DNA of 64,000 nucleotides, from contig JAPDFW010000095.1 of NCBI GenBank assembly GCA_028826165.1, forward strand, positions 1-64,000. Reading direction: 5' to 3'. Made by a program: the position numbers and the translations under genes. The stretch comes from Anaeramoeba ignava BMAN. Taxonomy: Eukaryota > Protista > Anaeramoebae. Numbering within the stretch: the first letter of the stretch is position 1; every line of letters starts with the position of its first letter. The notes beneath the pieces were generated by a model that saw only the letters and a program-made list of their open reading frames with translations, had not been told where the DNA came from and did not search any database. Positions 6,440 to 48,800 of this stretch are shown here, one piece after another.

Positions 6440-9400
6440 TTAATCAATTTTCAAAATCTTCTTAATCTTAATAACTAAAAGCCAATTATCTCTTGGCATT
6501 TCAGGAGATTTTTCACCATAACGTTCCTTCAAAGCATCAATAGATTTTCTTGACAAACGGGAATACAATTTATGAGAAGAATCAAAATGACGACCATACA
6601 TATAAGAAGTTTCTGAATGTTGAGACATGATCTTAATAGAAACACTTGATCCTTTATCAGCTTGATGAACAGGAGCTCTTTCTTTTTCAATAGAAATAAC
6701 GCGACCCAAATAGATGGAGTTATTTTCATCCAAATTAGCAACAATTGGGGTTCCGATTCGCAGGGATCCTTCTTCAATATCAACGCCCATAATGATCGGG
6801 TCTTTTGTGTTGAAAATATAGTCTGAAATAATTGATAGTTGACAAGGAAATACGATTTCGGTTGAAAGTTTGTTTTCCTTCTCGCGTTGAAGTTGTTCCA
6901 TATAAAGCTTGAACTGGTCAAAAAGATGATAAATAATGTCTGCTGTGAAAATTTTCACCCCGCGTTTCTGGGCAAGTTCCCGCGCTTCGGGCATAACTTT
7001 GACATCGAACGCGAGAATGATTGCGTATTCTTTCTGTTTTTCAATCATGATTGAGATTTTCTCAACGTCTTTCTTGTGAACCGGTCCGATATTGATTCCG
7101 GAAACCGGGATTTTACTTTCGCGAAGAAATTCAAGAAGCGCCTCCAACGCGCCAAGTGTTGATGACTGGACATAAACTCCTTTTCCGGATTTGTCAACGG
7201 AAGAAAGCATGATGTTGAAATCTTTCATGACTTCCTGTTTTAGAAATTCAAGTTCATCCGGATCGTTCGGGTTTTTGGGGATAAGAAGAGGTGATCCTGG
7301 AACTGCAAATTCCAGCTTGGCCGCAGCGATTTTGCATCCTTGAGCGGCTTTGAGTTGTGTGTGGTGCATGTATTCTGATTTGATTCGTAATTCCTTCAAT
7401 GGCTGCGGAGTCAGAAGTGCGCGGATTGTTGTGACTATTGCGCCTTCTCTTCCGCAGATCACAATTGTGTCGCCTTGATTTAAAACGCCATTTGCTAAAA
7501 TAACGTCGATTGTTGTCCCTAATCCGTCAATGATTTTCACCTCCAATACTGTGCATTGGAGTTCTGATAAATACCGCAATGTCTTGCTCATACGTTTCTG
7601 TGTGATCTGCACAAGAAGCATCAGCAGATCTGGGATTCCTTCGCCTGTGATTGCTGATGTAGGCACAAGCGAGACGTATTTTCGGATGTTCGGGTTGTTA
7701 TAATACAACTCTGCATTCAAAGCTTCTTCGTTAAATGCGGTGATAGTGTCTTTCAGTTTTTTCTGGAAATGATCCTTGGTGTTCCGTCCTTGTTTGCGCA
7801 ATGATTGCTTGAAATCTGACCATGGATTAGCCTTCCAATCCGTCAGTCGATCAATCTTGTTCAGCGCAACAACGAAAGGTGTCTTTCGCTTCCGCAGAAG
7901 ATTTATTGATTCCTTTGTCTGTGGTTCTAATCCGTGATGGATATCCACAACCAAAATTGCAATATCGCAAAGGGAACTTCCACGACTCCGCAGATTCGCG
8001 AAAGACTCATGTCCTGGTGTGTCGATGATTAACAGCCCAGGGAGATCATATGTGTACTTGTTTTGCTTGTTTAGAGATTTTGTCTGTTTTTTAATTGTTT
8101 CGATCGGGAAATATGTTGCTCCGATTTGTTGCGTTATCCCGCCAACTTCTCCGTCTTGAACTTTGGAGTGTCGGATTTTATCAAGTAGTTTTGTGTTGTG
8201 TGTTACTGTGAAATCCCCGAGTAAAAATCGGTTGTTATGATCAATTATAAAACCGTAATAATCGCCGTATTTTGTTTTTTCAACTTTGAATGCGTAGGTT
8301 TGTATTCGTTTTTCTTCTTCTTCGATATTACTTTTTCCAATAATAACTGTGTAATTTCTTTCGCATATTTCTGGTGTTTCTAGATTTTCACTCTTTGTTT
8401 GCTCCATTGTTGAATGCAATCCTAATGAACGACTCAGATAAACAACATCCTCTGCGAATTTTTCTCTTAAACCGCCAATTATATATTTTCCTTCTTCTTC
8501 AACTCCCTTTGTTTCCAAAATTCCTTTCAGCAATTCACTTCTTGTTTGTTTTGTGTTGCATTTTAATTCATATGGAATTGAGTCTTGGTGATCTTTGTGG
8601 TATTTTGCGAAGTTGCTAATAAATTTCTGATCTTCCATTTTCTTTGTTTCTAAATAGTTTTTTCCTGTTAAATAATTTGCTGCTAAATAATTCCCTGCCT
8701 TTTTTGGGTTGTGGTAGATTTTCTGAGGTGCAAATTCCGCAGATACTTTGTATGAATAATAGTATTCTTTCCATTTTTCAGATTTTCGGAGATATTCCTC
8801 AATTGAGATATCAATAGTATCTCCGATTTTATTTCCTTTTTTTTGTTTTTGCTTTACAAAATCATTGAGTTGTGATTCCATTTCTTGTGTAAATTCTTTG
8901 CTTTTCAAATGGTGATTTTCAAGCCAAAAAACAGTTCTAATTTGGCTATTTTCTTCGTTTTGAATTTCTATTGGCTCTTTTGAAACTACTAAAGTGAGAA
9001 TATGTTCTTTATTTGCCTCAAATGATTCCTTCAAAGTGTTTGTAATTTTGAACAATTGATCATATCCTTTGTTTATTGATATGACCTTTCTTGGAGTTTC
9101 ATCATCTCCCATAAGAAGATCACCTGGTTTTATATTTTGCACTTTTTCAATTTTACCATTTGCAAGAAGAATTTTTGTATCGCGTGCTAAGCATTTTCCT
9201 GTGTCAACATGTCCCAAAATGACGCAAATTGGGGAACGAAGATTTTGTGATTGATTACTAGAATCACCTTTTGATATCGGTTTTGTTTTGGCTTGTGGCA
9301 TAGATTGGGGAAGTTGATTTGATGATGAAGTTTTATCGTTATCCTTTTCCTTTTCCTTTTCACTTTTCATTTTCGTTTTCATTATTTTCATCTTCATTTT

Positions 9401-11914
9401 CATTTTCTTTATTTTCATCTTCATTTTCATCTTCATTTTCATTTAATTCGGGTTCATCAACTAATAGCATTTCCCAACTTTCAACCACAGTATCTTGAGG
9501 TTGTTCTTCTTTTTTATCATTAACGTTATCATTTTCTTCAATTTCTTTTTGATTTTCATTTTCTTCAATTTTTTGTTCATTTTCATTTTCTTCAATTTTT
9601 TGTTCATTTTCTTTTTGTTCAATTTCTTTTTGTTCAATTTCTTTTTGTTCAATTTCTTTTTCTTCAATTTGATTTTCTTGTTTTATTTTTTCTCTTTTTT
9701 CTCTTTCTAATTGTTTTTTTGTTTTCTTTTTTGGTTTCTTCTCTAGATTTAATGTTGGTGGAACTTCTGCAGGAATTAATCCTTGTTCAATTGCTTGTTT
9801 TTTGAATAAAAGATCTTTTTTTTTCTTCATTTCTTGTTTTTTTGATAAAATTAATCCTTTTTTGCGAAGTTCTTCTTTCTTTTTTCTTTTTTGTTCTTGT
9901 TTTTTCTTTTTGATTTCGAACTGTTTTTTTCTTTCAGCTTTTTCTTTTTTTTCTCTTTCTCTTTCTTGTTTTTCTAACTCAAGGATTCTTTGTTTTTCTT
10001 CTTCTTCTTCTTTTTGTCTTTGTAAAAATTCTCTTTGTTTTTTAAGAAGAGCTTTAGATGGTTTTTTTGTTTTGACTGGTTTTTTTTCTTCTTTTTTTTG
10101 TGGTTGTTGTTTTTTTTGTTCTTGATTTTGTTCTTTTTGATTTTGTTCTTTTTGATTTTGTTTTTCTTTTTGATTTTGTTCTTGTTGATTTTGTTCTTGT
10201 TGATTTTGTTCTTGTTGATTTTGTTCTTTTTGGTTTTGTTCTTTTTGATTTTGTTCTTTTTGATTTTGTTCTTTTTGATTTTGTTCTTTTTGATTTTGTT
10301 CTTTTTGATTTTGTTCTTTTTGATTTTGTTCTTTTTGATTTTGTTCTTGTTTTTGATTTTGTTTTTTTTGCTTTTGTTTTTGTTGTTTTTTTTGTTTTTG
10401 TTTTTTTTTGATTTGATTTTTTTTGATTTTTTTGTTTCTTTTTGATTTTGTTCTTTTGTTCTTCTTGTTTTGATTCTTTTTTTTTCTGGTTGTTGTTTTC
10501 TTTTTTGATTTTGTTCATTTTCAATTATTTCTTTTTGATTTTTGTTCCATAATTTTATCAAAATCTTCATCTTGATTTCTTTTTCCTTTTTCTTTTCCTT
10601 TTCCTTTTTGTTGTTGTTTTTGATTTTGATTTTGTTTTTGATTTTGATTTTGTTTTTTGATTTTGTTTTTGTTGATTTTGTTTTTGTTGATTTTGCTGTT
10701 TTGGTTCTTCTTGTTTTGATTCTTCTTTTTTATCATCTTCTTGTTTATCATCTTCTTTTTTATCATTTTCTTTTAATTCATTTTCAATTATTTCTTGATT
10801 TTCTTCCATAATTTTATCAAAATCTTCATCTTGATTTCTTCCTTTTCTTTTTCCTTTTCCTTTTTGATTTTGCTGTTTTTGTTTTTGTTTTTGTTTTTGT
10901 TGTTGATTTTGTTTTTGTGGTTGATTTTGTTTTTGATTTTGATTTTGATTTTGTTTTTGATTTTGTTTTTGTTGATTTTGTTTTTGTTGATTTTGCTGTT
11001 TTGGTTCTTCTTGTTTTGATTCTTCTTGTTTATTATCTTCATCTTTTTTTTTATCATCTTCTTTTTTATCATCTTCTTTTAATTCATTTTCAATTATTTC
11101 TTGATTTTCTTCCATAATTTTATCAAAATCTTCATCTTGATTTTTCCTTTTTCCTTTTTCCTTTTTCCTTTTTGTTGATTTTGTTTTTGATTTGTTGATT
11201 TTGTTTTTGTGGTTTGATTTTGTTTTTGATTTTGTTTTTGATTTTGTTTTTGATTTTGTTTTTGTTGTTGATTTTGTTTTTGATTTTGTTTTTGATTTTG
11301 TTTTTGATTTTGTTTTTGTTTTTGTTGATTTTGTTTTCTTGTTTATTCTTCTTGTTTATTATCTTCATCTTTTTTTTTATCATCTTCTTTTTTATCATCT
11401 TCTTTTAATTCATTTTCAATTATTTCTTGGTTTTCTTCCATAATTTTATCAAAATCTTCATCTTGATTTCTTCTTCCTTTTCTTTTTCCTTTTCCTTTTT
11501 GTTGTTGATTTTGTTTTTGATTTTGTTTTTGATTTTGTTTTTGGGTTGATTTTGTTTTTGATTTTGTTTTTGATTTTGTTTTTGTTGATTTTGCTGTTGC
11601 TGTTTTGATTCTTCTTGTTTATCTTCTTGTTTATTATCTTCATCTTTTTTATCATCTTCTTTTTTATCATTTTCTTTTAATTCATTTTCAATTATTTCTT
11701 GATTTTCTTCCATAATTTTATCAAAATCTTCATCTTGATTTCTTCTTCCTTTTCTTTTTCCTTTTCCTTTTTGTTGTTGATTTTGTTTTTGTGGTTGTTG
11801 TTGATTTTGTTGATTTGTTTCTGTTTCTTTTTGAGTTGTATCAGTTTCTGTATCTTTTTGTTGTTGTTTTCCTTTTTGAGATTTTTTATTTTTATTATTT
11901 CTTTTTGGTGGCAT
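6440..11914 (-). CDS. eIF5B: Translation initiation factor eIF5B (IF2), intein-containing; long K/E/Q-rich repetitive N-terminus broken by apparent frameshifts
   Basis: Motifs LRSPICVILGHVDTGK/TKLLDKIR, GGITQQIGATYFP, LIIDTPGHESFANLRSRGSSLCDIAILVVD, VALNKID, VPTSAITGEG and a C-terminal YGRHFD..LYSRLSRKSIDALKE. Upstream ORFs 9360-11914 form a contiguous charged N-terminus starting MPPKRNNK. Confidence 0.95.
8195..9193 (-). mobile_element. Intein (333 aa, class-1 Cys...His-Asn/Thr+1) with degenerate LAGLIDADG endonuclease region
   Basis: In-frame 999-nt insert between GHVDTGK and TKLLD. It starts CLARDTKILLANG (block A), contains ESFEANKEHILTL (block B His) and ends YYGFIIDHNNRFLLGDFTVTHN (blocks F/G), followed by Thr. 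The internal RSELLKGILETKG...FAEDVVYLSRSLGL resembles endonuclease blocks E/H. Confidence 0.97.
10500..11760 (-). repeat. Five tandem ~270-330-nt coding repeats in the eIF5B N-terminus
   Basis: The unit KGKGKRKGR.NQDEDFDKIMEENQEIIENELKE.DKKEDDK plus a Q/N/K tail recurs near 11730, 11460, 11135, 10830 and 10570 (last copy partly diverged). Confidence 0.85.
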
Positions 11915-42884: not shown

Positions 42885-45800
42885 ATGAATCCAACTTATT
42901 CAATCCCACTTTTCTTAATTTCTTTTTTGTGTTTAATTTTATTCATCATTTGTGTTGTTCGTTGGTCACTTTTATTATCAAGAACAAAACAATTAGTTCA
43001 TCAAAAAGTAAAAATAAAATTTAAAACAAAATTTAAAACAAAATTTAAATTCAAAATTTAAAATAAAAATTAAATTCAAATTTAAAACAAAATTTTTTCG
43101 GTTTTTTTGAATTGATTTTCTTTTAAGATTTTCTTTATTTTGGCTTCTATTTTTTCTATTACAAGATCAATTTTTTTTCTTGTTGCAGGTTTTTCTTCTA
43201 AAAAATATATTTTTGATGAACAAATTTATCTTATTATAGATACTTTGGAATTGGGTGTTTTAATTTCTGCTTTTCTTCTTCTTATTTTTTCTTTGTAATT
43301 TGCTTATTTGTTTAATTTTAATTCAAATTATAATTTAATCTCAAATTTTAACTTCAAAACAAAATTAAAGTCTTAAAATGTTATTAAAATACAAAAATTT
43401 AAAATGACGAATTAATTTCAAAATATTTACAAAATATTTATATTATTTATAATATGAGAGATTCGAGGCACAAAAAAATAAATAAAAAAAAAAGCCTTTG
43501 AAAGCCTTTCATGCCCCAAAAATTATTCTATTCTCAATTAAATTTTTTTTTTCCTATAATTTTAATAAAAGATCTTATTTAAATTTTTTTTTTCCTATAA
43601 TTTTAATAAAAGATCTTATTAAATTTTTTTTTCCTATAATTTTAATAAAAGATCTTATTTAATTTTTTTTTTCCTGAATTTGAATTTAAAAGAAAAATTT
43701 TTGCTTGTTTTGATCCATTTTTCCTTTTCTTTTTTTTTTTGAAATGTCACTTTTTTTTGTTACTTTTTCAAACAAATTTGCGCTTTTTCAAGTTGAAAAA
43801 ATAATCAATTTCAAAAATTTCCGGAAAGAAATTTCGTTCATCTTTTCTTTGAGGAATGAAATAAAATCATTCTACTATTTCTTTCTCCAAAAGAAAATTG
43901 AAATCAAAAATAATTCGAGTTTGGAAATCTTTGTTGGTTTGGTCAAGAAGAAACATGAGGATTTAGAAGTTTATGGAAATATTGGGGTTTTACACATAAA
44001 TTATGAATCAAAGATTAAAAACCTAAAAAGGAAGTAAATGGAACAGTAAAGCAATTTATCCACAAGAATTCATTTCTTACTTTGAATGAGACCAATTTTT
44101 CTGTATATTGCTCAATATGCGATAAAAGAACTCCAAGGAATCTCTAAATGGAAAATTCAAAGACATTGTAGGTCACAACATCATCGCCTTCTTATTCCTT
44201 TGAATTTACAGCAACAGAAGAATGAAGGAAGATGCAAACTTTGATTCAAAAGAATCAGCCTTACTTAGAATCCTAGAACATTTACAAACGTTCTCAAACA
44301 CAGATTTTTATTCCAGGAAAGAAATTCCAACTTATAGAACAGGCCTCTCTAAAAAAAGGATTTTCAAGCAAATATCTGATTCATTACCCAATGTAGATTA
44401 TAGAAAATTTTGCTTTTATTCGAGTCATTATTTCTGTTTGAAACACAATACACCAATTTTCTTCCAATGTGAAAGTGTGCAAATCCTAATCCTCAAAAAG
44501 TGGCGAATCACAGAAATAAAGTTCAAATGATGAGAAATTTCTTTAAAGATGAAGTACAAGATCCCACAAAACTAGTTATTATTTTAGATTTCGGAGAGAA
44601 CATACAAGAATATCGAGATGAGTGGAATACTCAAGAATTTTACATCAAAAATTCATGGGTTATCTTCAATATATGTTTAATTCAAGGAACTGAATTTGAA
44701 TATTACGATTATATCTCAGAAGAGAAAAGCAAAGTAATGTTATAGAATTTAGAATTTAGAATTTACAAAAAAAACTTAAAAAAATCTTAATTTTGTTTTA
44801 GGATTCGGTATTTGTGATGGAATCTTTAGGAAAATTTGCACAAATTTTAGATCAAAAACAACGAAAAAAAAAACTAAATTCTTATGAAAGCATTTCAATT
44901 TTTAGTGACGGAGGATCTAGTCTCAAAAATAATTTGGTGATTCCAACAATAATTCAACTCTTCTCTTCTAATTTTAAGAAAATTACCATTGGATATTTTC
45001 TCACAAATCATGGTAAAAATTACAGTGATGCCCATTTCGGCAATATTTCAAGAAATAGATCAAGCTTTGGGAATATAAGAACAATTGAAGAGTTAGATAA
45101 TTATCTGAAAACTCTGAAGAACACTTTTCCAACAATTATGTCAGTTGACCGTTCGATTAAATATTCCTACACACAAGGAATTCCATATCTGAAAAAAACT
45201 CATTTATTTTTTTATGATAAAGGTCATTTTGAAGCCTGGTTTAATCCCCAAAGAAGAGGACGTAAAAGAAGAATTCCAATAATCAAGAAGATTCAAATTT
45301 ATGATAAAGATTTAGCCAATCATAATTTTCAGATTCAAGATGTGAATGAAAAAAATCACTCAAAATTAATACAGCCAATATCTCAAAATCTTCCAATTTC
45401 AAGAAAGGAGAACGAAAAGGAGGTTGATAATCAACAAAAAGAAGAAAACCAAAAGCGACCATTTCTGAGCCAAAAAATTACAAAAAGCAAGAAAAGAAAA
45501 AATCAAATGATAGAAATTTATAACGAAAATCAACAAATTGAAAAGAAAAACAAATCTAACAAGATTCCTGAATTAGAAATTCAGAATTTACTTCCCTTAA
45601 ACCAAAATTTGAATAGAGAAAACCAGGTAAAACTAAAAAAAAGAAAATATTTTCTTTTGTGTGCTTCTCTTTCTGATTTTCTTTGAATATTGTGTTTTAT
45701 AGGTAATTCAAACAATCCCCAACTCTGGAAATTCATGTTATATCGCATCAATTGTCCAGATTTTGATCAGGACATCAGCTCGAAACCTTCTTCCTTTAGG

Positions 45801-48800
45801 AGATATCTCAGAAAAATTATGGGATATTTTTAATTCAAAGCAAAGATATATAGAAGTCCAAGATTTGAGAAAGGAAGTAGGTAAGCATTTTGTCAATTTT
45901 GATAATTTGAACCAACAAGATCTACACGAATTTTTTATTAATTTATTCGAATTATTGGACAAGGAAACAATTTTAGATATTCCAGATAAAGATGATCTTT
46001 TGTATCATGCCTTTGATTTATGGAATAAAACTATTTTGAATGATTTTTGTATTCGCTTAATTCAAAAAGTGAAATGCTTGGAATGTAAACATTTTTCCTT
46101 TAGTTTTCCTCAAGAAACAGGTATACTGCTAAGTTTAGAAAGTGAAAAAGATTGTAACTTAATAGAATTGCTCAATTCATTTTTCTCAAAAAATTACTTT
46201 GATGAAAACAATCTCCTATTTTGTGAACATTGTCAAAAAAAAGTTCAAAGTTCTTTCCAATTTTTTTTAATTCATATTCCCAAATTTTTCATGATATTTG
46301 TCAAAAGAAGCTTCTATGATCCAATTTTGAAGGAAGAAAGAAAAAATATGGCAAGAATACAAGTTCCAAGAAAGATTCAACTTAATAATTTTTTATTCTC
46401 TCCTTCTAGTTCTATGTCAAACTCATTGTCATTTTGGGGATCAATTCATCACCAAGGAGAAGAACAAGAAGCAAAAGGAGGTCATTTCTGGACTGAAGTG
46501 AAAGATGAAAGAAATGCTGGAGATTTTCAAGTTTTTGATGATTCGACAACTTTGACTATTCCTAATCCTTGCCGGAAATCGAATTCATATGTCTTGATGA
46601 CATATAAAAGAGATGATAAGTAAATATTCCATTCAAATTCAACTAATCTCTTTTTTCTTTGATTGATTTTTCTTGATTGATTTTTTTTGATTGATTTTTT
46701 TTGATTGATTTTTTTTGATTGATTTTTCTTGATTGATTTTTTTTGATTGATTTTTTTTGATTGATTTTTTTTGATTGATTTTTCAAAAAATAAAAATTTC
46801 CCCATTAGCCTTTTGCGGCCTCAAATTTTCAGGTTTCACAAAAGAATTTTTAATTTATTTTTCAATAAAAAGGGGAATTTTTTTTTAAATATTTTGAGAT
46901 GTTTTTGCCTCTCCCTTTCTCTCATATTTATATTATTTATATTATTTATATTATATTTACAATATTTATATTATTTATATTATATTTATAATATTTATAT
47001 TATTTATATTATTTATAAAATATTTATAAAATATTTATATTATTTATATTATATATATTATTTATATTATTTATAATATTTATAAATTATTTATATTATT
47101 TATATTATTTATATTATATATAATATTTATTATTATTTTATATTATTTTATATTATTTATAATATTTATAAAAATTATTATATATTTTTATTATTTTTAT
47201 ATTATTTTTATATTATTTATAAAAATATTTATAATATTCAAATTATTTATATTATTTATAATATTTATATTTATATTATTTTATATTATTTACAAAAATA
47301 TTTATATTATTTTATATTTTATTATTTATTTATATTATTTTTATATTTATTTTATAATATTTATAATATTTATAATATTTATATTATTTATATTATTTAT
47401 AATATTTATAATATTTTATATTATTTTTATATTATTTTATATTATTTTTACAAAAATATTTTATATTATTTATATTATTTATAAAATATTTATATTATTT
47501 TATAAAAATATTTTATATTATTTATAAAAATATTTATATTATTTATATTATTTATAAATTATTTATATTATTTATAGGTGTTTATATTATTTATAAATTA
47601 TTTATATTATTTATAAATTATTTATATTTTTTATATTATATTTACAAAATATTTTATATTATATTTTATATTATTTATATTATTTTATATTATTTATATT
47701 ATTTATAATATTTATATTATTTTATAATATATTATATTTTATTTTATTTATATAATATTTTATGTTTATTTATATATTATTTATATTTATTTTATTTATT
47801 TTATATATATTTATTTATATTTATATCATTTTATAAAAATTTTTATATTTATTTATATTATTTTTATATTGTTTATATTGTTTTAATATTTTTATATATG
47901 TTTATATTATTTATGTTATTTTATTTATATTATTTATTTTATATTATTTTATATTATTTATATATTTTACATTTTTTAATTTTATAAAATATTTTATTAT
48001 TTATTTTTATATTATTTTATAATATTTATATTATTTATATTATTTAAATTATTTAAATGATTATTTATATTATTATTTATATTATTTGTAATATTATTTA
48101 TATTATTTATAAAATATTTTATATTATTTATATTATTTATATTATTTATGTATTTATATTATTTATATTATTTATATTATTTATATTATTTATATTATTT
48201 ATATTATTTATATTATTTATATTATTTATATTATTTACAAAATATTTATATTATTTATATTATTTACAAAATATTTATATTATTTATATTATTTATAAAA
48301 TATTTATATTATTTATAAAATATTTATATTATTTATAATATTTTAAAAAATCAAGACACAAACATTTTAGTACACAAGAATTATATGAGACACAAAAGAA
48401 AAAATTAATAATATTCTTTACTATAGCAGATACAATTATGATAGGAACTGATATAGCAATTTCATTTATAACTGCAGGTGGAAGAATGATTCTTCTTGCA
48501 GCTGAATTTCTATTAATAGGATTTGGTTTATTAATTTATAGTAGCAAATTTCGAAAAAAAGCACATGAATCACAAATTTTTTTTAGAGTTCTTTTAATTT
48601 GCACAATTCTTTTTATAATTAGAGTTCCTATTTCCCTTTTTTTGGATGAAGATGAAGCTAATCTTCACTATTCTCTTTATTCTACTTCTATAGTTGTTTG
48701 TGTTTTAATCACTGAAATTATCCCTGTTTGTTTGATTATCTTTTATATTTTTATCATTCCAATTAAAACTGGTAATTTTCAAATTTTAAATTATTTTTCT

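Follow-up and report, generated by a model that had tools for sequence, protein, structure and literature searches.

A Sola2-like DNA transposon of Anaeramoeba ignava with a predicted transposase–USP fusion protein

Anatomy of the element and its copies

We analyzed a 64,000-nucleotide (nt) stretch of DNA from the anaerobic amoeba Anaeramoeba ignava BMAN (contig JAPDFW010000095.1, positions 1–64,000, forward strand; the window) and found a transposable element whose gene is predicted to encode a transposase joined to a ubiquitin-specific protease (USP, class C19) domain. The element is 3,468 bp long, with a left end at 43456 (GAGAGA…) and a right end at 46923 (…CTCTC), and is directly flanked by ATAT on both sides (43452–43455 and 46924–46927, the latter bordering an A/T minisatellite). 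Alignment of the ends revealed short, imperfect terminal inverted repeats (TIRs) of about 22–26 bp with the common blocks GAGAGA and GAGGCA. The left repeat (43456–43477, + strand; GAGAGA then GAGGCA-AAA) is identical in five copies of the element, and the right repeat lies at 46898–46923 (− strand). Between the ends, the 5′ non-coding part holds three tandem copies of a 39–41 bp unit (43537–43672, +; repeat families D6 and D8), and the 3′ non-coding part holds a 14-nt tandem repeat (46639–46790, +) whose copy number varies among element copies.

The A. ignava genome contains five full-length copies, 96–100% identical across all 3,468 bases, with pairwise substitutions of 0.26–1.66%. All have the same ends, unrelated flanks and an ATAT target-site duplication (TSD) of their own (5/5); they carry private substitutions, and their identity breaks off exactly at the inverted ends. 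Given the shared ends, separate duplications, unrelated flanks and low divergence, we conclude that the element is a recently mobile cut-and-paste DNA transposon. The initial annotation of the window had described a 3,468 bp element with a DDD transposase; both ends and three invariant aspartates agree with that description, and the search it proposed for further copies with 4 bp TSDs returned these five, all with ATAT.

As NCBI annotates these loci as host USPs and the assembly is Nanopore-based (PMC11550330), domesticated host genes, segmental duplications or collapsed-assembly artefacts were also considered. The abrupt loss of identity at the inverted ends, the unrelated flanks, the separate duplications and the private substitutions leave such explanations hardly any probability, and segmental duplication was rejected on these grounds.

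The flanking sequences suggest that the preferred target may be longer than the duplicated ATAT, about AATAT(T/A). The window copy (flanks 43420–43455 and 46924–48000) and one copy of a related family (family B, L036; see below) lie in the same kind of A/T minisatellite.

A three-exon gene for a predicted fusion protein

The gene consists of three exons on the + strand, 43744–44733, 44802–45626 and 45703–46623, predicted to encode 331 + 275 + 306 = 912 residues. In the intact sister copy L004, exon 1 spans 331 codons. It comprises an N-terminal domain, a putative C2H2-type zinc finger at about 44109–44184, a CxxC motif and the first putative catalytic Asp (44587). Exon 1 is followed by intron 1 (44734–44801; 68 nt, phase 0, GT-AG). 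Exon 2 (275 codons, 825 nt, stop-free) encodes the transposase core with the second and third Asp (44907 and 45027) and ends in a linker of about 110 residues, rich in N, K, Q and E and with basic clusters. Intron 2 (45627–45702; 76 nt, phase 0, GT-AG) lies at the boundary between linker and USP, with its donor CAG|GT at 45627 and its acceptor AG ending at 45702. Exon 3 (306 codons plus TAA, 918 nt stop-free to 46620) encodes a complete USP domain.

The second intron had been placed at exactly these positions by the initial annotation, and the sequence confirms it. Its splice sites are identical in all five copies, and all full copies carry the USP. Intron 1 and four indels in exon 1 are features beyond that annotation. 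The indels lie at about 44021 (−4), 44124 (+1), 44236 (+1) and 44471 (−1), and because of them the window copy as assembled cannot encode the full 912-residue protein. The genome is a Nanopore R9 assembly polished with Pilon (PMC11550330). Nearly all frameshifts in this family are private to one copy and most lie within base runs, which fits Nanopore errors; they are probably errors left unpolished in repeats, real decay being the alternative.

We infer from the conserved sites that the fusion is spliced in vivo. The public models P0001 and P0010 make the intron 1 join at the matching site, and the public annotation of sister copies (KAJ5069497.1, KAJ5069443.1 and KAJ5079105.1) joins the exons at the same sites under a product name that mentions the USP only. 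The private variants of the contig C93 copy are also present in KAJ5069497.1 (P0010). As public gene models also bridge frameshifts via apparent false introns, they were not counted as transcript evidence. The earlier statement that six-frame open reading frame calling misses the fusion is true, but the public annotation of sister copies had already joined the exons.

Three related families retain the fusion

The genome was searched exon by exon for relatives of the element (family A hereafter), and three more families (B, C and D) were found. Family B has six copies of 3.65–3.79 kb that are <1% apart, with ends GAG…CTC and ATAT duplications wherever both ends could be located (copies on contigs C1, C24 and C80). 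Its USP exon is stop-free in all six copies, and all three exons are open in three of them (C1, C24 and C128). Family C is represented by one 4.6-kb copy with ATAT at both ends. Here a single frame of 570 codons spans the transposase core, linker and USP without the second intron, so that the in-frame fusion is present in the genomic DNA itself. The USP of the single family D copy is frameshifted within a run of A, and the right end of this copy is uncertain.

Intron 1 falls at an identical codon position (K|D) in each of the four families. The position of intron 2 is common to families A, B (63 nt) and D (96 nt), where the intron is in phase 0 and precedes the catalytic Cys by 11 codons. In the USP exons of these families, the first Met is found at residues 197, 82 and 42, respectively, i.e., after the Cys at residue 12, and a stop immediately upstream closes the USP frame. 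The Cys box of families A, B and D can therefore be translated only via splicing. Identity of the USP among the four families is 22–40%. Taken from sequence, the transposase is joined in frame to the USP in an arrangement kept by four very different families.

Retention of intron 2 in family A would bring an in-frame stop at 45684–45686, 19 codons into the intron. This raises the question of whether intron 2 acts as a switch, with both forms being made: a transposase without USP when the intron is retained and the fusion when it is spliced. The intron stands at the domain boundary in three families with an in-frame stop in each, and the retained form would keep the whole DDD core. However, family C has no intron 2 and is still fused, in-frame stops are expected in AT-rich introns, and an intron at this boundary may derive simply from the captured host gene. 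We regard a switch as unlikely. All introns of families B, C and D (L038, L044 and L049) contain in-frame stops and have lengths divisible by three (57, 63, 90, 99 and 96 nt); the intron lengths in family A (68 and 76 nt) are not divisible by three.

Further traces of these elements were observed. On contig C67 (24253–25544, −), transposase matches are followed by a match to the USP N-terminus in the same orientation, and this locus is probably a fifth, decayed family. Locus L043 (contig C73:208268–211818) consists of decayed, rearranged fragments, with a family-A-like USP piece (81–88%) and right end together with two family-B-like transposase pieces. The 3′ GATT-containing tandem repeat (46639–46790 in the window) is shared by families A and B and runs the opposite way in family C (L038, L044), and similar repeats match more than 100 places in the genome; it may serve as a termination or binding signal or be a widespread satellite.

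The USP domain is intact and under purifying selection

Exon 3 matched the Pfam UCH profile (PF00443) with E = 1e-21 and 78 bits (cut-off 23.9), in line with the complete C19/USP domain of the initial annotation; the scores for families A, B, C and D were 78, 93, 135 and 80 bits. Its relatives in the Protein Data Bank are USP8 and USP15. In the window, the Cys lies at 45736, the His at 46483 and the Asp residues at 46537 and 46540, all intact and exactly where they had been placed before. The QQD box is at 45913, and the CxxC pairs of the zinc site are at 46075 and 46222. The oxyanion Asn, the Cys, the His, the second Asp and four cysteines of the zinc site do not vary among the four families. 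In family B, the Gly of the Cys box is replaced by His and the first Asp by Ser, and in family D the Gly preceding the His is missing.

The USPs of families A and B share 40.5% identity, with a nonsynonymous divergence (dN) of 0.54 and a synonymous divergence (dS) of 1.49; their ratio, 0.36, is an upper estimate, third positions being near saturation. The USP is as conserved as the transposase core (42%, dN 0.60) between these families; the linker is at 26%. The USP exons of families A, B and C are free of stops, where shuffled sequences gave about 22–25 stops and none of 2,000 per exon was open. These comparisons show that the USP is under purifying selection.

These data bear on whether the USP is passive cargo, either recently captured and decaying or a separate gene that is not joined to the transposase. 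Dictyostelid Sola2 elements do swap unrelated 3′ cargo, e.g., Fanzor1 (PMC3627910). On the other side, a stop-free USP with its catalytic residues persists in four families whose synonymous distance is near saturation, dN/dS does not exceed 0.36, core and USP share a single frame in family C, and no Met precedes the Cys in the USP exon. Neutral cargo and a separate USP gene were rejected on the selection, the single frame of family C and the missing Met, and this explanation is now largely refuted. The recent neutral capture that the initial annotation had named as a counter-case, with dN/dS near 1, is likewise not what the ratio indicates.

A structure model of the USP (pLDDT 92.4, pTM 0.88) showed the thumb-palm-fingers fold, and Foldseek matched it to USP8 and USP2 (TM 0.81–0.83, E 1e-26). 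The conserved residues suggest a catalytically competent deubiquitinase (DUB). The fold might instead have been kept for another job, such as binding ubiquitin or cleaving NEDD8 or SUMO. These domains diverge fast, with long branches, and the substitutions in the Cys box and at the first Asp of family B, with the lost Gly of family D, would suit such a role. Ser is found at the first Asp position in the active enzymes USP30, USP16 and USP45. The survival of Asn, Cys, His and second Asp at 22–40% identity argues for catalysis, and the zinc-site cysteines of the fingers subdomain are invariant. A role other than ubiquitin cleavage thus appears improbable, a little more so than the intron switch.

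A Sola2-like element by ends, TSD and motifs

The three Asp residues of the transposase (44587, 44907 and 45027) are invariant in the four families and lie in the motifs DF, SD(G/N)G and HxK/RxxxD, with spacings of 83 and 40 in family C; their position suggests a catalytic role. A DDD-type pattern of three Asp motifs is characteristic of Sola2, as is an N-terminal C2H2 zinc finger. In families A, B and C, a CxxC…HxxxxH motif was found; the Pfam matches to zf-BED (E = 0.002) and zf-C2H2_12 (E = 0.03) were both below the cut-off. Sola2 termini reportedly read 5′-GRG … CYC-3′ (Bao et al., 2009), and families A, B and C have GAG…CTC termini.

Dictyostelid Sola2 elements have a 4 bp AT-rich TSD, short imperfect TIRs of 12–21 bp and a protein of about 900 residues, and their DFa and PPa families tend toward extra coding parts on the 3′ side (PMC3627910). 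The element described here resembles them in its DDD-type triad, its 4 bp AT-rich TSD (ATAT being among theirs), its short imperfect TIRs, its protein of about 900 residues and its additional 3′ coding part. It differs in the in-frame C-terminal USP and in the strict ATAT target at all ends read.

Profile comparison (hhalign) matched the transposase at 99% to a metagenomic transposase, P0167, which has the same Asp motifs and spacing but no USP. The match to Pfam DUF7869 (E = 0.008) was below the cut-off, and structural matches in the Atlas (TM 0.61–0.64) were to eukaryotic clusters, including DUF7869. The single-sequence fold of the transposase had a pLDDT of 37. We file the element as Sola2-like, a placement made by ends, TSD and motifs rather than by alignment to catalogued Sola proteins.

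Three Sola-like frames of the A. ignava genome, at C142:103108–104769 (−), C64:165830–166360 (−) and C51:34218–34817 (+), have 1,200, 585 and 619 codons, respectively. None of them has a UCH, OTU or C48 match in its vicinity, and the frame of 1,200 codons may include a further added domain. Residues 2–74 of P0001 gave a weak Pfam match to the Crinkler N-terminal domain, which has a ubiquitin-like fold (E = 0.02, below the cut-off), and may form a PB1/ubiquitin-like domain. The N-terminal 92 residues of the window protein had no useful match in the Atlas.

Origin of the USP

In a tree with nine host and 24 other USPs, the four transposon USPs grouped together with support of 97/96, and their nearest neighbors were host USPs of the A. 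ignava genome, with weak support. The phylogeny against host USPs that the initial annotation had proposed thus clusters the transposon USPs (71/95 in a reduced set). A single capture before the four families split is likely from this grouping, and the captured domain probably came from a host USP. The transposon USPs are at most about 31% identical to any sampled USP. They share with the catalytic domains of the host-type enzymes USP8, USP2 and USP15 the fold, the Cys, QQD, His and Asp boxes and the zinc site, but form a minimal domain of 300 residues without host regulatory parts, inside a transposon.

Comparison with known protease-carrying transposons

The combination of a DDE-type transposase with a C19 peptidase in one metamonad protein has a precedent in Trichomonas vaginalis XP_001314237.1, which contains transposase_11 and Peptidase C19 (PMC2836005). 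That transposase belongs to PF01609, whereas the one described here is Sola-like, a distinction drawn from its description; no PF01609 match was found in the exons of the element at E up to 1 in the Pfam search. As the transposase families differ, the two captures are most likely independent. In addition, the Trichomonas case was mentioned as one protein, whereas here several multi-copy families with ends and TSDs are at hand.

Other cysteine proteases of ubiquitin or SUMO have been described on transposons: OTU or Ulp1 at the C-terminus of Ginger1, Ulp1 on Mutator/MULE and OTU on Helitrons (PMC2836005). Like Ginger1 and MULE, the element attaches such a protease to a cut-and-paste transposase, and in those groups, too, the attachment is often via introns; they differ in using OTU and C48 proteases rather than USP and in belonging to other transposase superfamilies. 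No integrase-like or Mutator transposase, OTU or Ulp1 match to Pfam was found in any exon, and the OTU and C48 matches of the A. ignava genome are located elsewhere. The element thus works like these protease carriers but is not a member of them. The VTD domains of Helitrons are active DUBs that prefer K48 and K63 chains, and protection from proteasomal degradation was proposed for them (PMC9741609). Helitron and Helentron VTD and OTU domains resemble the USP in being transposon DUBs with a conserved active site within the transposition protein, but these are rolling-circle elements with another DUB class.

No report of a Sola–USP fusion was found in the searchable literature, outside which lie most subscription journals and Repbase Reports. 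In an exhaustive protein search dominated by USPs, both parts were present only in three Anaeramoeba proteins among the 150 best matches. A word-based search for transposase homologs among proteins of similar length returned only Anaeramoeba proteins and one metagenomic protein, and scans of viral and metagenome contigs gave no match. We conclude that this is a new combination, Sola-like transposase with USP, of a known idea. The novelty first ascribed to it was overstated, given the Trichomonas transposase–C19 protein (PMC2836005) and the active Helitron VTDs (PMC9741609).

Discussion

We propose that the element is an autonomous Sola2-like cut-and-paste transposon whose three-exon gene would yield a protein of about 912 residues. 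From the N-terminus, this protein would comprise a DNA-binding part with a zinc finger, the DDD transposase, a flexible charged linker and a competent USP. The transposase would bind and cut the GAG…CTC ends and insert at ATAT. Tethered to it, the USP would carry DUB activity to the transpososome and act there locally. We put the probability of a functional, selected fusion whose DUB activity acts locally at roughly three in four. Retention of the covalent fusion over long divergence suggests a local substrate, and a benefit to transposition may be inferred.

Several points weigh against this proposal. Each family A copy as assembled has at least one coding frameshift, and the splicing is predicted from genomic DNA. 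The structure model was driven by a USP alignment and thus depends on the sequence match. The grouping of the transposon USPs joins long branches, drops to 71/95 when only families A and C are kept and one long host branch is restored, and comes from a tree that sampled only about ten of the host's many USPs. Finally, Sola-like transposases without a USP exist (P0167 and the three A. ignava frames that lack a neighboring UCH match); transposition as such therefore does not require the USP, which is an accessory.

Regarding the substrate, we rank first the possibility that it is the transposase itself. The USP would strip ubiquitin off the transposase or transpososome and thereby delay proteasomal or p97-type removal; we hold this tentatively, at somewhat less than even odds. 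Ranked second, and doubtful, is that the tethered USP acts where the element is excised and inserted, removing ubiquitin there from histones, PCNA or break-signalling proteins and so directing repair or dampening the damage response. The tether to a DNA-bound transposase would place the USP at breaks, and Bao et al. (PMC2836005) proposed a repair-related role for the OTU and Ulp1 domains found in transposases. Several of the fold matches belong to USPs that work in chromatin or repair, yet these are generic matches to the USP fold. No feature pointing to a particular substrate was found, and the top matches, USP8 and USP2, reflect only the common fold.

The protection of the transposase can be extended to the idea that an old, still-active Sola-like lineage relies for its counter-defence on a captured, tethered USP, which reverses ubiquitin-based restriction of the transposase. 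We consider this stronger claim rather unlikely as it stands. If true, it would suggest that these protists have a hitherto undescribed pathway that acts against transposons via ubiquitin and, together with the Trichomonas transposase–C19 protein, would mean that metamonad transposons captured USPs repeatedly and independently.

The reason for ubiquitin and SUMO proteases on transposases has been an open question from 2010 or earlier, and there have been hardly any tests. The element offers a compact test system of 3.5 kb with one gene: its ends and target are defined, sister copies with open frames exist, and the enzyme comes in four natural variants, so that a single Cys mutation can test whether transposition is raised by deubiquitination. 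With this element, the Sola superfamily would gain the USP class. Moreover, at least 13 USP-matching loci of the A. ignava genome are transposons, which inflate counts of host deubiquitinases.

Additional observations

On contig C89 (+), two co-oriented motifs resembling element ends, ATAT followed by GAGAGATT, were observed at 85422 and 87164, 1.7 kb apart and without a transposase match; they are possibly non-autonomous or nested ends. Elsewhere in the window, positions 6440–9442 (−) hold an eIF5B/IF2 gene with a Hint (Hom_end-type) insertion at residues 83–414, within the GTPase domain, i.e., an intein. Anaeramoeba is rich in inteins.

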